64,000 nucleotides of DNA from Salpingoeca rosetta. Lineage: Eukaryota; Protista; Choanoflagellata. The notes beneath the pieces are model-generated. The model made no database searches. It was not told where the DNA came from and saw only the letters and a list, made by a program, of their open reading frames with translations. A program made the position numbers and the translations under genes. Shown here piece by piece: positions 40,413 to 48,805 of this stretch. Location of the stretch: positions 486,638-550,637 of the forward strand of contig JAWQFM010000025.1 in assembly GCA_033442325.1 (NCBI GenBank), read 5' to 3'. Each line of letters begins with the position of its first letter. The first letter of the stretch is position 1.

Positions 40413-40774
40413 TCAGTTTGTGCCATGTTCGCCGCCCCCGCTGCCGCCCCCACTGCTGCCCCCACGCCCAGCAGTCTGTAGGCTGTTGCTACCATCATCA
40501 TCAGCATCATCGTCATCGTCGTCATTGTCACCACCACCACGATCACGATTGCGATCATGCGGGGTGTTGTCGCTGTCACGTTGATCAGCACCGCCGTCGT
40601 CGCCGCTGCATGTAGTTCTAACGACAGGAATCACATGCTCGCGAAACTCGGGCGATAGGCTGGCGCTCGTGCCGTGACCCCGCCTGACCACGCCGTCAGC
40701 GTTGCCTTCACGGCTGCCACGACGACCACGGCCAGTGGCACCGCGTCCGCCATGGGGGAGGCCACCGCCACCGC

Positions 40775-40808
<34 letters not shown>

Positions 40809-41280
40809 TTGTTGTTGTTGTTGCTGCTGAAGGTCGCCACCCTCGCAACCACCGTCACCGCTGCCGGCGCCTGCTTGCAGAGGGCGTATTGTCGATGCAG
40901 TGTCGGCTGCCATGGGCTGCTTCCCTCGCTGCTCTTGCTGTTGTTGTTGCGGTAGCCCTGCAGTGGTGGAGGAAGCAGCTGCACGGCCAGGCTGTGATGT
41001 CACGCACGACGTGGGAAGCGTGGACAACGACGACGACGACGATGATGATGACACTACCAGTGCTGATGCTGATGTTGATACGGAGGTCGACGGGGGAAGC
41101 AAAGGCGCAGCGTGTGTGGTCGGCGCGTAGGACATCGTTTCCGCTGCGCCTACAGGCCGCCCTGATGTTGGGGTGCTCGTGACCATAGCTGACGGCGGCT
41201 GGCGCTCCGTCAGCGGGGCAGCATCAGCGGCCCAAGCAACCTGTGCACTTGCACGGCGGCGCAAGGAGTGTTGGCGGTAA

Positions 41281-41359
<79 letters not shown>

Positions 41360-42153
41360 GCCCTTGGTTGTGACTGTGCTGATGAAGAAACGGCTGCACA
41401 TCGGGTGGCGGTGCCGAGGCCGTGTGCGGGCGCAGTGGTGACAGCAACATCATCGTGCCTTGTGGTGGCGACACCTGTTGCCCGTGAACCTGCTGCCGGT
41501 GTTGCCGTTGTTGTTGTTGTTGTTGTTGCTGCTGCTGGTGGTGGTGGTGGTGGTGGTGGTGGTGGTGGCGATCTTGGAGCCGCTGTGATGTGGGCGACTG
41601 GGATGACGCCAGGGACGACGACGACGGTGAGAGCGAAGTCGGAGACAGTGCCTGGTGCTGGTGAAGCGCCTGGGTCGCAAGCTGCGTAAACGCTCCGCGC
41701 GGCCGAAACTCACTGGAAGACGCCACCAGCTGCTGCTGCTGCCGCTGCTGCCGTTGCTGTCGTGGCTGTTGCTGCAACTGTTGTTGTTGTTGTTGTTGCT
41801 GCTGCTGTGTTCGTCGCGAGGGGGGTCCCAGCCGTCCGCCTGCACCTTCGGTATGCCCATAGGGGTGCTGCCCTGCCGCAACGGCACTTCCGTTATCAAC
41901 GCCAATGCTTCCGCCACTGCCCTGTACGCGCGTATCAGACTGTATGCCCATGCCTTGCAGCGTGCCAGCTTGCACGGGCGTGAGAAACCCTTCGCTGCCA
42001 AAGCCTGCAGGCACAACAGCCAGCACCTGCTGTCCGTTGGGCAGGAGCAGAGGGACCAGGTGGTGCGGCTTGTCAAGGACCTCCACGCCGCCGTACACAT
42101 ATGACGGCACCTCTTCTTGCTGTTGAAACTGCGGCAGTTGCTGTTGTTGCTGC

Positions 42154-42199
<46 letters not shown>

Positions 42200-42201
42200 G
42201 C

Positions 42202-42259
<58 letters not shown>

Positions 42260-44363
42260 GGGGCTGCTGCATGTGAGGGTGGTGCTGACTGCGCTCTTCG
42301 TCAACACCCCCAACAACATTACGGCCACGTCCTACACCAGCATCTTGGTCTCCGCTGTCCGGTGCAGCGCGCAAATCAAGCCGCTGAACAGCCCGCTGCC
42401 GTCCGTGCCGCAGCTGGGCAGAGGACACGCCAGCAGCACCAAGATCACCATCAACATCACCATCGTCATCATCATCATCATCACTGTCGCCGCCCCAATC
42501 ATCCCGACCACTGCGACGAACAGGCAACGCTGGCAGCTGACGTTGCTGTGGCTGGTGCTGGAAGCGGTCATCAGGGCACTGAAGCTGTGGTAGTGAATGG
42601 TGACCACGGGTGGGTCTCCTTACGTATCCATCACCACCGTCACCACCACCGTCTGCATCATCACCACCATGGTCATCCGTGCCATGGGCGGTGGCAGCTG
42701 CCGGCGTGGCCATGGAGGCGCCTGTGCGCAAGGCAGCGCGTCTCCCCGCCCGGCCCCGCAGCAGGTTGTGCTCGCGCACGAAGCCGCTGCCACCAGTACC
42801 ACCACCGCCACGCATCTCCACACCACTGCGAGGGGCAATGTTGGTGGTGGTGGTGGTGGTGGCGGTGGTGCTGCTGCTGGCACCTCGCCCTGTGGCAGCT
42901 CCTGCAAACACGCCACGAGCCGCCATGGGCTCGGCCTCCATCCCACCAGCATCTTCATCATCGTGCCCCAGATCGACGTGCTGCTGCTGCTCGTCATAGC
43001 CAAAGTCGTGGTCGTGGTCGAAGCTGTCCGTGGTGGTGCTGTCCCCACCGTCTCCAGCGCCGTGTTGTGGTGCAACTGCGTGTGCGTGGCGTGGAAGCAT
43101 GCCGGCATCACCACCACCACCGCGACCGCTGCTCCTGCTGCAGCCACCACCACCACCACCACGATGCCCACCAGCGTCAAGGGACGTGGCCGGGTGTTGC
43201 TGCTGCAGGGAGAGGTGGCTCTGCACCGTGCCGGCCTGTGTCGGAATCATCTCAATATCAGCGCCGCCACCACCACCGCCGCTACCACTACGGCTGATGG
43301 CACCTCCCCTCACGTCTGCATTGGACACGGACGACGTTTGCTGCAGACGTTGCTGCGCACCGAGCGGTTGTGCATCTCCCCGCTGCATCACCTGCGCTTG
43401 CTGTTGCTGCTGGTGCTGTTCAATGCCATACGAGTGGTGCATTGGTGCTGGCGTGACGTTGTGCGCCAACTCAGAGAGGCTAACATCATCATACGCATGC
43501 TGCTGCTGCTGCTGTCGTCGTTGTCGGTGCTGTGGTTGTTGGTGTTGAGGCTGCGGCTGAAATCGCGCCGTAGAAGCGTGGCGTTGTAATTGCTGCTGTT
43601 GTTGTTGTAATTGCTGCTGCTGCTGTTGTTGTTGTTGTAGTTGCTGCCGCTGTTGTTGTAGTTGTTGTGGCTGTGATGATTGGCGCAGTTCGGGCTGTGG
43701 CGGAATACAATGTGGCGGAAGCTGCTGAAATTGAGGAGCTACCTGCTGCATCATCTCTTGCGGCTGCATGGACTGCGGCTGTGGCTGTGGCTGCTGCTGC
43801 TGTTGTGGGGTTGCGGTGAACAACTGCGTGCGCGGGAACGCAGCCATATCTGAGCGGGATGCTGGTGACTCATCTGCGCTCAGCTTGCGGTAGTTGAGCC
43901 GCACCAGGTTGGCGCCAACAACGGGCAGCCTGTCCACGCACGCCATTACGCGGCAGCGCGTGCACTTGACCCGCGCGGGTGTGTTGTACGCAAACTGTTC
44001 GTCGGAGCAGTCCTCACGGCCGGTGCGGCACGCACGCGGGTTGAACCCTTTGAGCTGCTTCAGCGCGTGATGAAACGCAGCCATCACCTCCGTGTACGAG
44101 CGCAGCTTGTTCAGAGGCAGGGGGACGCCTTCCACAAGCATCTGTCGAATGGACGCCTTGATGTACTTGTACAGGATGCCGTAGCACGACTTGCAGTGGT
44201 CCTTGCCAAACTTGACCACGTCCTGGCACACCACACAGCGGTCCGCGCGACCATCCTGGGCATCATCACCAGCACCGCCGCTGCCGCTGCTGCCGCCCAT
44301 GTCATCGCCCAGATGCGCGCGTTTGTCCGCCACGCTTGTGGGCTGATGCCGTCGCTTGGACAT
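40413..44363 (-). CDS. PolyQ/low-complexity putative transcription factor with N-terminal nuclear-receptor-like C4 zinc-finger pair; no ligand-binding domain visible
   Basis: 1316-aa uninterrupted ORF with a basic N-terminus (MSKRR). Residues 43-142 read CVVCQD...FGKDHCKSC...CRTGREDC...RVKCTRCRVMAC. The rest is Q/H/G/S/D-rich. Confidence in the CDS is high; confidence in the family call is moderate. Confidence 0.8.
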
Positions 44364-45885
44364 GGGGAGAATGGGTGTGTGACGGGGCTGAGACGGAAGC
44401 GGGGGGGGGAAGCAGAGTTAACCAGACGTCTGCCCTTGATGTGGGAGGTGGGTGGTGGTGAACGGCGTGGAAGATGAGAGCGGCAGAGTGGCGTCAGCGC
44501 TTGGCGATGTTAGGAACCGATGGATGCAGAGCGTCGTGTGTGCGTGTGTGCGTTGAGTGATGGGGATGATGGGGATGATGGGGATGATGATTGCGCCCAC
44601 ACTATGTCATGGAATGCTGGCTGTCCAGTGGCGTTTTGTGCAATGGAATGCACAGTGACAAAGGGCGCGGTGCCGAGGTTGCTTGCTGTGCTTGTTGCTG
44701 CTTGCTGTGCTTGTTGCCGCTTGCTGTGCTTGCTGCTTCCTTTGAATGCCGGCAGACAGTGCGCAAGGGTTCCGAGGAGAAGGGAGCGGGGAGACTGGTA
44801 CAGTGTGGTATGCACACCTTGTCGAAGTCTCAAGGGCCTGTGTTGAGTGGAAGCGTCGAACACCGAAACAGAAAGAGAAACAGAAGCAGAGAGAGATGGT
44901 GAGTGTGAGAGACGTGCGACGCAAGAGGGTGTGTAGATGAACAGTAGGAGAAGAGGCAAATTAAGGGTGGGACGTATGGTTCAATTTGGGGGAGCGGAGA
45001 AATGCGTGCGAGTGGAAGGGTGCCATCACGAATACCTTTGCCACAGGCTTCTGTGCGGTGCGGCAGAAGACAAAAAAGGAGCGAGGCCAGGGTGCTTGGT
45101 CGCAAGCACGCCATTGTCCTTCTTGTTGCAAGCGAAGCAGAGTAAGCGCAGCAACGACGAGAGCAAGCGCAGCCTGCATGTACAGGAGCAAAAGGCGCTG
45201 CTACGGCAGTGGCATGGGACTGTGTTGGCGATGCCGCGCACTCCCTGCGAAATTTTCAAGCGAGACGGTCAGGACAAGCGCTGGCGTGTCTCGCCTGTGC
45301 TTCGCTGTTGACGAGGTGCGCACTGTCCTCATCGTCAGTGTTGGTGCAGATTTGCATCGCTTATGGAGGATTGATGGAAACTGTCAACAAGAACCGTGTG
45401 GACCCAAAACCGCTGACACTCTGCTGTAAAACTGCTGACGCGATTCCACGTGGGTGCCGATAATTGCGCGTAATTTCCACGATTTGTCGAAACAACAAAC
45501 CTGAAGCAAGAAGAAACGCAGCAAGCAAGCAAGGGAAAAGAGAAGCCACGACAAACAAACCTTTTCTCTTCCACAAACCCGCAAGCACGCCACGCGACTG
45601 ACGACCACCACCGCTTACGCGAGCACCTTGACTGTCGATTGAACGCATCCATCTCTTTGTTTCTCTCGCTCGCGTGCTCTCCCTGCTCTTGTTGCATTTG
45701 GAAGCTCCACTCTGCCTTGAGTGTCCCTTGTGCTTGTTGCCGTCTTGTGCAACGTTTTGCGACACCGTTATTGTCTGTGGAACAACCACCCACGGCCCGA
45801 CCGTTCAGCATTCTTGTCTCCACGCCAACGCGTAAGCGCCACAGAACACCGAGCTGTTCTGGAAAACGAAGGAGAAACCACGTTT

Positions 45886-46283: not shown

Positions 46284-47267
46284 TCACACACACACACACT
46301 CACACACTCACACACTCACACTCACATCACACACACACACACTCACACGCACACCACACACACACTCCCCTCGCGCCTTACTTCCTCTCAGGTCTATTGA
46401 TGACCCTTTCTACCGCTACAAGATGCCTGCCGTGATTGCCAAGGTTGAAGGCAAGGGCAATGGCATCAAGACCGTCATCCCCAACATGAGCGAAATTGCC
46501 AAGGCGCTCGACCGCCCACCTTCCTGTACGTCAAGTTGTTGGTCGCATGTGTGTGTATGCATGTGCGTGAGTGTGTGCCTGTATGTATCTGATTTTGGTT
46601 GTGTGTTCACCCTGTGGTGTTCCTGGCAGTGCTGTCGTGATGGTTTGTCTTTCACCTGTGCTGAAACTCACCTGCGTCTTCGACGCCTTGCGCCCCCCCC
46701 CCCTCTTTCTTCAACTTCGTTTTCTCGTCTCCCCCTTTTTCCATCTTCAACTTGCTTGCAGACCCGACCAAGTACTTTGGCATTGAGCTTGGCGCGCAGA
46801 CCAAGATGGACGAGAAGAACGACCGCTACATTGTCAACGGCGCGCACACGGCAGATGACCTGCAAAACACGCTCGACGGGTTTATCCAGAAGTTTGTGCT
46901 GTGTCCCAGCTGCGACAACCCGGAGACAGAGCTGCGTGTGTCGAAGAAGACAATCAAGCAGAAGTGCGCCGCATGCGGCTACTCTGGCCAGCTCAAGCAC
47001 GCCGGGCACCGCCTTTACAACTTCATCATCAACCACCCGCCCAAGACATCCGCCGTCAAGTAAGCCTGCCCCTGCAGCTGTGTGTGTGTGTGTCTGCGCG
47101 TCTGCGCGTCTGTGCGTCTGTGCGTCTGTGTGTGTGTGTGTGTGTGTTTGCTTTGTGTTTTGGGGGAGGGGGTGGAGTGTGTTGTTGGCTTGTTTCGTCG
47201 TGTCGTTGCACTCTTTGATTGTGTGGATCCGCATCTTTGTTGGTGGCTCGCTCGCACATTGACACCC

Positions 47268-47332
<65 letters not shown>

Positions 47333-48805
47333 TACAAACAACAGGAAGGCGAAGGCTGCAAAGAAGGCGAGCGAGGGCGAGAAGAAGGCCAGCAACGGGG
47401 ACGGCAAAGCGAAGCCTGCGGCCAAGGCAGACGACGACGACGCCGCGTTTGCCGGTGACATTGAGGCGCCCGAGCTCGACACAGAGCGCAACGACGATGA
47501 CGAGGAGTGGACGGAGGACACAAGCGCAGAGGCGGTGCGCCGGCGCGAGGAGAGCCAGCTGACGGGCGCCGTGTCCAAGCTCATGGCCTCTGCCGACGCC
47601 GACCTGCCCATGGACGAGCGCGTAAACCTGTTCCACGCGTTTTTGAAGGAGCGGGTTGACCAGGAGCCGTTTCCAACCAAGGAGGTGATTGACAAGGCGC
47701 TCGTGCTGGACGTGCTTGATGCCGCCGGCGTGGTGCTCGTGGAGGTCCTGCTCGAGGGCTCGAACATTCTCGCCCTCCTCAAGAAGTACGTCACATGCAG
47801 CGGAGACGGTGGTGGTGGCGAGCGATTTGGTGTGTGTGTACGTGTGTTGCATTTGATTGTGTGATGTTGGCGTTGTGTTTTGGGGCTATGTGCACATGCG
47901 CATGTAATCCACTCGCCTTGGTGGCGTGCATCACATCACGTCACATCACATCACATCACAACTTGTCTGCTTCTTGTTTGTGTTTGTGCACATTTTCTCA
48001 CGCGTATTCCTGTCCGCGTGTCTCCTTTTTTTTTTTTTTTCCGGCCAGGTATCAGGCTGTGCTGCAGCACTTTTGCCTGGACCGCCCAAAGGTGCAGCGC
48101 CGCCTCCTCAACGGCATTGAGATCAAGGTCAAGGCCGGCGACATTAGCATCAAGCAGGTGCGCCCAATGCAACTGCAGTGGGATTGGGAATGCGTTGCAT
48201 GTACGGGGTTGGGGTTTGTGTGTGTGTGTCTGTGTGTGCGTGCGTGTTTATGTGTGTGCGCGCGTGTATGTGTCTGTGTGTGCGTGCGTGTTTATGTGTG
48301 TGCGTGTGCGTGCGTGCGTGTGTGTGTGTGTGTGTGTGCGTCGCAATGTTTGTGCAATTTGTTTTACCAGTCGCTGCAATGCTTCCGTGAACGCACTCAA
48401 ACAGCCAAATGCACATCAAGCCTCACCCCTTTTCTCGCCGTTACCCCCTCCATACACGTGACCGCGTTGCTGCTGCTGCTGCAGATGCCGACGGTGCTGA
48501 ATGCGCTGTACCAGCTGGACATCATTGATGAGGAGAGCTTTTTTGGCTGGCACAAGAAGGTCTCAAAGCGTTATGTGGACAAGGCGCTCTCTGCTGACAT
48601 TCGCAAGCACGCGCAGCCGTTCATCGACTGGCTGCAGGAGGCGGATGAGGAGGAATCTGACTCGGACGAGGAGGAGGACGGTGGTGCCTCTGCTGCCGAC
48701 GACGACGACGATGTTGTGACGTTTGCTGCCACGGCCGACGCCGCCAACCCACCCGCCAAGGAGGAGGAGGAGGAGGACGACGATATTGACATTGACGCCA
48801 TCTGA
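46082..48805 (+). CDS. EIF5: Eukaryotic translation initiation factor 5
   Basis: Exons read [59 protein letters not shown] and [12 protein letters not shown]...CAACG (zinc finger), followed by [13 protein letters not shown] and the W2 domain [10 protein letters not shown]...W...[16 protein letters not shown]. Confidence 0.97.

Follow-up and report, generated by a model that had tools for sequence, protein, structure and literature searches.

A conserved eight-cysteine domain of choanoflagellates and its possible relation to the nuclear receptor DNA-binding domain

Introduction

Does the genome of the choanoflagellate Salpingoeca rosetta encode a relative of the DNA-binding domain (DBD) of nuclear receptors (NRs)? 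The question is raised by an open reading frame (ORF) of 1316 amino acids in a stretch of 64,000 nucleotides of assembly GCA_033442325.1 (contig JAWQFM010000025.1, positions 486,638 to 550,637 of the forward strand), hereafter called the window. A preliminary description, made from the sequence alone, had proposed that this ORF carries a divergent relative of the NR DBD without a ligand-binding domain (LBD). Choanoflagellates lack whole NRs (Bridgham et al. 2010, PMC2950128). For the NR DBD, the one claim of a pre-animal occurrence that we found is an unspecified match to the Pfam domain zf-C4, reported from the data of some choanoflagellates and not accompanied by an LBD (Lopez-Escardo et al. 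2019, PMC6792448; cited in PMC8942334); the supplement of PMC6792448 holds no zf-C4 entry. Here, we describe a family that is invisible to Pfam zf-C4, yet has a predicted fold nearest to that of the NR DBD. As it occurs in the genetically tractable sister group of animals, the question of the origin of the NR DBD becomes directly testable. Our favoured reading, which we judge fairly probable, is that the ORF encodes a nuclear regulator of a family confined to choanoflagellates, combining a basic eight-Cys, two-zinc domain of NR-DBD-like predicted fold with a Q-rich tail.

Conservation and Expression of the Cysteine-Rich Domain

Nine of the 15 Cys residues of the protein lie within 100 of its 1316 residues (binomial probability of 2.8e-7 per fixed interval), namely at residues 43, 46, 57, 60, 112, 119, 134, 137 and 142. 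Their spacing, C-x2-C-x10-C-x2-C-x51-C-x6-C-x14-C-x2-C-x4-C, and their location (residues 43-142, or window 43938-44237) are exactly those given in the preliminary description. A word-indexed protein search with the domain yields one relative, a protein of Barroeca monosierra, and HMMER, run exhaustively on 1.84 billion cluster representatives, matches eight proteins. The named relatives among the latter stem from Barroeca, Choanoeca flexa and Monosiga brevicollis, and the others from environmental assemblies. Since every named relative is a choanoflagellate, the source belongs to the sister group of animals and not to the animals themselves, as the non-animal origin presumed at the outset implied. 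The Barroeca protein is a clear orthologue with 67% identity over the domain; the remainder of both proteins is almost unalignable, two short motifs apart.

The first eight Cys are kept in Barroeca, Choanoeca, the environmental relative P0003, the Monosiga locus and a second S. rosetta gene (C34, see below), and C43 is found in every aligned row that is long enough to reach it. Finger 2 of the environmental gene model P0006 shows three Cys only, possibly through an error of the model. Conservation thus extends to eight of the nine Cys on which the preliminary description had relied: the ninth (C142) is replaced by Ser in P0003 and P0009 and by Ala in P0006. The domain has an isoelectric point of 9.4 in the S. 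rosetta gene, and across four members this value ranges from 9.1 to 9.8, with a net charge of +8 to +16. In Monosiga, finger 2 is encoded in the genome (HCDPYAFHFETPAQHKCARCRVLSCIEHLP) within a modelled intron, and the annotated protein lacks it. The model concerned (XP_001746650 on CH991554.1; L039:6200-6600) skips a small finger-2 exon in the frame-shifted 'intron' between ...KQRLRRPCSG and LTLQLLRMHL, leaving half of the domain out of the database protein.

Stranded RNA-seq reads of the same species cover positions 43680-44967 at a depth of 1-7x, with zero depth past 44968. The first mates map to the plus strand only, hence the RNA derives from the minus strand. No RNA-seq joints fall within the domain, which is therefore unspliced and contained in a single exon. 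These data bear on the trivial explanation, in which a chance Cys pattern is read from a spurious or non-coding ORF in a repeat-rich region. Low complexity of the CAG type does dominate the ORF, and long ORFs overlap it on the other strand. Nonetheless, a domain identity of 67% across species, eight Cys kept in four genera, strand-specific RNA reads and collinear, conserved downstream motifs all speak against this explanation, which we regard as extremely improbable; the conservation of the domain refutes a chance pattern. The domain is real, conserved and expressed.

A Choanoflagellate Family of Eight-Cysteine Domains

The S. rosetta genome (55.4 Mb, 68 contigs) contains further copies. A search with the whole domain returns one paralogue, C34:205108-205874, in which both fingers of the window gene recur; its domain is C-terminal and interrupted by one intron. 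A profile restricted to finger 2 matches loci on C18, C34, C3, C33, C13 and elsewhere in the genome, and the single-exon C13 domain, when used as a query, finds 12 loci, including the window locus at E 0.295. The family alignment is collinear and reads C-x2-C-x10-12-C-x2-C-Y-x-G-h-[YF]-x2-[IV]-x-K, a linker of 39-51 aa, and [RK]-G-C-x4-6-C-x12-14-C-T-R-C-R. What had been described as an insertion of approximately 35 aa between the fingers is, across the alignment, a helical linker of 39-51 aa that is constant in every family member.

The window gene conforms to this collinear signature and, like the other members, combines the Cys pattern with Q-rich partner regions. It departs from the usual layout of the family: most other members have a C-terminal domain split over 2-4 exons, whereas here the domain is N-terminal and lies in one exon. 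Its first loop also lacks the CPVC-x-G-x-GR signature of the other members, and the searches link its subfamily to them by finger 2 only (at the E value of 0.295 given above). Within the subfamily, which includes the C34 paralogue, clear relatives are found in Barroeca, Choanoeca and Monosiga. On the basis of the alignments, the window gene belongs to a choanoflagellate eight-Cys family that counts about 13 loci in S. rosetta, and is a divergent representative of it, its domain being N-terminal and free of introns. This N-terminal one-exon domain, kept in four or more choanoflagellate genera, makes it the easiest entry point to the family.

About a dozen further loci carry pieces of the type CPVC-x-G-x-GR...C-x2-C-Y-x-G-V-Y-N-D-I...MPRGC...KCTRCRS. 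They comprise G000:C13:1454027-1454383, C18:787908-788408, C28:580811-580966, C7:1625263-1625427, C3:557136-558143, C33:235283/318477/391227, C36:199804-199911, C30:460401 and 485141, and C13:1015437. Most are split into several short exons with TG/CA-repeat introns between them, and the matched exon does not differ between the two C30 copies. A word-indexed protein search with the domain of the C13 member gives no match, a result that is weak because of the word filter. Literature searches revealed no description of the choanoflagellate eight-Cys family.

Sequence Comparison with zf-C4 and Other Zinc Domains

By every defining sequence criterion, the domain lies outside zf-C4. The Pfam profile PF00105 (curated cut-off of 21.1 bits) does not match the domain, the whole protein, nine relatives or the isolated fingers at E ≤ 10, nor does it pick up the window locus when the genome is scanned in all six frames. 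The preliminary description had suggested that the split spacing could hide the domain from zf-C4 searches. The observed spacings (2, 10, 2, 51, 6, 14, 2) miss the NR pattern C-x2-C-x13-C-x2-C-x15-17-C-x5-C-x9-C-x2-C, from which four of the seven differ. The first loop counts 10 residues compared to 13 in NRs, the linker 51 (39-51 in the family) compared to 15-17, and the second finger follows x6/x14 (x2-6/x12-14 in the family, the C5-C6 loop varying from 2 to 6 residues) instead of x5/x9. The NR P-box C-E/G-G/S-C-K-G/A/V and the five-residue D-box are absent as well: where NRs have CEGCKG, helix 1 opens with a CKSCYG that does not vary within the subfamily. Both the first loop, shorter by three residues, and the atypical P-box had already been recognized in the preliminary description. 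The non-conserved ninth Cys, the lack of an LBD and the occurrence in choanoflagellates rather than animals are further differences from NRs.

Being undetected by PF00105, the eight-Cys family is probably not the zf-C4 reported in PMC6792448. The genome scan with PF00105 returned matches at C31:210311-210472 (L003; 24.1 bits), which has no CxxC pairs, and at C23:207872-208033 (L004; 16.8 bits); both are read as spurious. Note that a survey based on the PF00105 cut-off alone would count zf-C4 as 'present' in this genome through the C31 match.

A more distant relation has to be weighed separately. The choanoflagellate family and animal zf-C4 may be true remote homologues that descend from one two-zinc ancestral domain, of which the animals shortened the linker and to which they fused an LBD. 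We consider this possible, though with a confidence that stays short of even. In its favour, choanoflagellates are the sister group of animals, zf-C4 without an LBD has been reported for some of them (Lopez-Escardo et al. 2019, PMC6792448), and both sides have local motifs outside the Cys in common (C-x-V-C-x-D, C-x2-C-x-G-h-h and C-x2-C-R-h-x2-C-h). Profile comparisons were based on NR DBD fragments retrieved with an RXR DBD as bait (its best match shows 96% identity in the aligned region and no difference in the 61-residue Cys core); all fragments carry PF00105, and the 27 that hold the whole DBD form the local NR profile. With all filters of hmmsearch off, this profile reaches only 7.3 bits on the domain, in two collinear pieces, which counts against homology. 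With the linker intact, hhalign gives a probability of 3% (P 0.015, 18 columns) for an alignment of five sequences, likewise an unfavourable outcome, and 23% (P 8.8e-4, 61 columns) for one of 21 rows. With the linker trimmed to approximately 15 residues, the probability rises to 57% (P ~1e-4, 62 columns) and 60% (P ~1e-4, 59 columns), respectively. The trimmed alignments cover both fingers (NR columns 2-65/66 of 74), and this collinearity favours homology; these best scores do depend on a trimming that we picked from 72-90 variants.

The contribution of the Cys to these scores was isolated with a null in which the Cys columns were held fixed while each segment between two Cys had its other columns shuffled. 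With p values of about 0.01-0.1, the outcome is mixed: shuffles attain the observed score in 5 of 200 cases for the trimmed five-sequence alignment and in 1 of 150 for the 21 trimmed rows, which supports homology, but in 16 of 143 for the 21 rows with the intact linker, which does not. It follows that most of the NR score comes from the Cys scaffold and that the non-Cys resemblance is only marginally above chance. The diagnostic residues that the preliminary description had listed (CVVCQD, FGKDHC, CKSCYGILYKYI and RVKCTRCRVMAC) are all present, but their match to the NR DBD is only marginal once the Cys are fixed. Global column shuffles of a fragment-rich alignment gave z >11; this null was rejected as too easy, since it scrambles the gap structure. 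Sequence and profile searches of 177,635 PDB sequences with the domain or with single fingers return no NR at E ≤ 10, but weak rows for Cas3, Prp2, NPR4, FYVE and MDM2, and the single-finger profiles favour FYVE and RING. Moreover, small Cys-rich domains are prone to spurious profile matches. Together with the four deviating spacings, the different P-box, the variable ninth Cys and the blank PF00105 searches, these results weigh against homology.

The nearest Pfam family is DZR_2 (PF18912; cut-off of 27 bits), with 13.7 bits on the domain and 19.1 bits (E 0.0012) on finger 1 alone, both below the cut-off, and no match on finger 2. The rows for DZR_2, DZR, Lentivirus_VIF and similar families were set aside, all being sub-threshold. 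As the sole near Pfam match, DZR_2 favours a rival explanation, according to which the domain is a convergent pair of zinc modules that does not read DNA. It could then be a double zinc ribbon or a treble clef with protein or RNA as its ligand, serving to organise the Q-rich protein within a complex. Double zinc ribbons (DZR_2; DZR, PF12773; the ComF N-terminus) indeed resemble the domain in the C-x2-C-x10-C-x2-C of finger 1 and in having two consecutive four-Cys sites. A language-model feature search also lists small zinc-ribbon-like proteins as neighbours, with all matches below 0.9 and, as such, uninformative. On the other hand, the DZR_2 score concerns one finger only and stays below its cut-off, and ribbons lack the long helices that are predicted here from the third Cys. 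Neither the strongly basic character of the domain nor its most conserved surface, a helix that matches the NR recognition helix, fits this explanation well. The same applies to the combination of a basic motif, a zinc domain and a Q-rich tail, which is an architecture typical of transcription factors. We consider convergence of this kind unlikely. Even if the resemblance to NRs were convergent only, an unannotated lineage-specific family of probable transcription factors would remain, with approximately 13 genes in S. rosetta.

Predicted Fold of the Domain

AlphaFold2, run with a nine-sequence alignment, models the S. rosetta domain with a pLDDT of 83.2 and a pTM of 0.79. The Choanoeca domain as target gives the same elements (pLDDT 80.2, pTM 0.76). 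The S. rosetta model comprises a 21-residue helix from the third Cys, a linker helix, a poorly defined C5-C6 loop, a helix from the seventh Cys and a final helix. The arrangement of eight Cys as two four-Cys modules, each with a predicted helix from its third Cys, is that of the NR DBD, and the further C-terminal helix is comparable to the CTE/T-box helix of some NRs.

Both models were aligned exhaustively with 48,161 PDB representatives. For the S. rosetta model, NR DBDs occupy 10 of the 17 top rows (listed values of 3.9-5.0, 66-82 and 3.1-4.2 Å; identity of 17-22%). For the Choanoeca model, they stand at ranks 2-7, 10-12, 14 and 20, or 11 of the 20 top rows, with listed values of 4.7-5.9, for most rows 68-77 and 2.8-3.9 Å, and an identity of 13-25%. 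As an example, 72 of 76 residues of 8ifo_A are aligned at 2.9 Å, while 4nqa_I is an outlier (95 residues, 9.8 Å). The matched receptors include HNF4a, RXR/LXR, PPARg-RXR, ERRg, Nurr1, RAR-RXR, TR4, VDR, GR and ROR. The other rows are helical proteins aligned to the helical part only, with an identity of ~3-14%. Foldseek, which had been suggested as a check together with AlphaFold, also places NR DBDs at the head of its lists, where they fill the majority of the leading rows with the S. rosetta model and the top 25 rows with the Choanoeca model, at E values of 0.8-3 and TM scores by target of 0.43-0.59. For these models, it agrees with the exhaustive alignment in ranking, but not in significance. 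In a shape search of the ESM Atlas, clusters of RAR, zf-C4 and RXR appear at TM 0.46.

As a family, NR DBDs thus come first in four independent structure searches, which together cover two models. This speaks for homology, as does the identity of 13-25% in the aligned NR pairs, compared to 5-10% in the other rows. All structural scores are sub-threshold, in agreement with convergence as well. In our reading, the known fold nearest to the models is repeatedly that of the NR DBD; this match is suggestive, but not decisive. Several observations weigh against the favoured reading of a nuclear regulator. The C5-C6 loop is modelled with a pLDDT of only 52-58. A Cascade small subunit, the MCM8/9 N-terminus, FF domains and Ron13 score similarly on the helical part, and the Atlas lists small archaeal proteins and bacterial ComF double zinc ribbons beside the NRs, although the latter at a lower TM score (0.41). 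Furthermore, the RNA depth over the zinc domain is low (1-7x).

Of the claim of an LBD-less relative of the NR DBD, the conserved domain and its best structural neighbours stand, whereas membership in zf-C4 and support from PDB profile searches do not. None of the sequence tests demonstrates common ancestry with the NR DBD; the family is hence a candidate relative, not a proven one, and we consider such an ancestry possible, but less likely than not. A more explicit scenario, in which the family is the surviving sister lineage of the NR DBD and a free-standing two-zinc DNA reader of the common ancestor of choanoflagellates and animals later, in animals, had its linker shortened and was fused to an LBD to give rise to the NRs, strikes us as doubtful. 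As to its kind, we rate the domain as a predicted two-zinc DNA-binding module of GR-like fold.

Proposed Function and Architecture of the Protein

Under the favoured reading of a choanoflagellate nuclear regulator, the protein would work like a zinc-finger transcription factor, most probably one that is nuclear, binds DNA and ends in a Q-rich tail. The eight conserved Cys of the domain (residues ~38-165) would bind two zinc ions, and a predicted helix runs from the third Cys of each four-Cys site, the two helices being predicted to pack as in the NR DBD. A conserved helical hairpin of ~35-50 aa would lie between the fingers, with one more helix after finger 2. Helix 1 is the most conserved stretch of the family in the alignments and, judged from the models, a candidate DNA-recognition helix; this invariant helix (CKSCYG-h-LYK-x-IK) may enter the DNA major groove and read a short site. 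Nuclear import could be mediated by the basic N-terminal motif, and the Gln/His-rich tail, together with two short conserved motifs, may recruit partners or drive activation. The coordinates of these parts are collected in Table 1.

Table 1. Features of the S. rosetta eight-Cys gene in the window
Feature	Position	Strand	Description
Whole ORF	40413..44363	-	1316 aa and a stop codon; domain region without visible intron; transcribed 5' leader to ~44967
Basic N-terminal stretch KRRHQPTSVADKRAHL, residues 3-18	44310..44357	-	Putative nuclear localisation signal
Zinc module 1, C43-x2-C46-x10-C57-x2-C60	44184..44237	-	C46, C57 and C60 invariant in all aligned rows
Helix 1, residues 58-78, CKSCYGILYKYIKASIRQ	44130..44192	-	Predicted to begin at third Cys; AlphaFold H21-41, pLDDT >90
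Inter-finger segment, 51 residues	44031..44183	-	Rest of helix 1, loop, second predicted helix (residues 90-102), loop
Zinc module 2, C112-x6-C119-x14-C134-x2-C137, then non-conserved C142	43938..44030	-	Predicted helix begins at C134 (CTRCRVMACVDRL)
C-terminal helix of the domain, residues 147-164, PVVGANLVRLNYRKLSAD	43872..43925	-	Model H110-127; length kept in subfamily
Low-complexity tail, residues 166-1316	40416..43868	-	Gln content of 21.5%; longest polyQ run of 41; His10 run; stretches rich in Gly or Asp
Short motif LVPLLLPNGQQVLAVVP, residues 769-785	42009..42059	-	Conserved with Barroeca (FIPLLLPDGRRVLAVV); candidate partner-binding peptide
Short motif EFREHVIPV, residues 1239-1247	40623..40649	-	Barroeca counterpart DFSEHVIPV; candidate partner-binding peptide

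The KR-rich stretch near the N-terminus is a putative nuclear localisation signal. Most relatives have a (D/E/A)KR(A/P)xL motif that precedes the domain by 20-35 aa, as seen in the upstream sequences of P0001, P0002, P0007 and P0008. The remainder of the protein is the polyQ- and His-rich tail without an LBD that the preliminary description had outlined: Pfam finds no domain in the 1316-aa protein, its tail included, nor an LBD (Hormone_recep, PF00104). A stretch similar to the motif at residues 769-785 recurs in Choanoeca and Monosiga as LVPQ(Y/F)VNT.SGP..VLMP, and we infer that this motif may bind a partner.

The neighbouring gene at window positions 46400-48800 (plus strand) reads like the translation initiation factor eIF5 in six-frame translations only, with N-terminal exons and an acidic W2-like C-terminal end separated by CA/TG-repeat introns. 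From 34243 to ~35199, the window contains a run of N, which may be an assembly gap, with GT/AC dinucleotide repeats on both sides. This run, and not biology, accounts for the apparent drop in GC content to 0.29 between 34 and 36 kb as well as for the long 'ORFs' of that bin.

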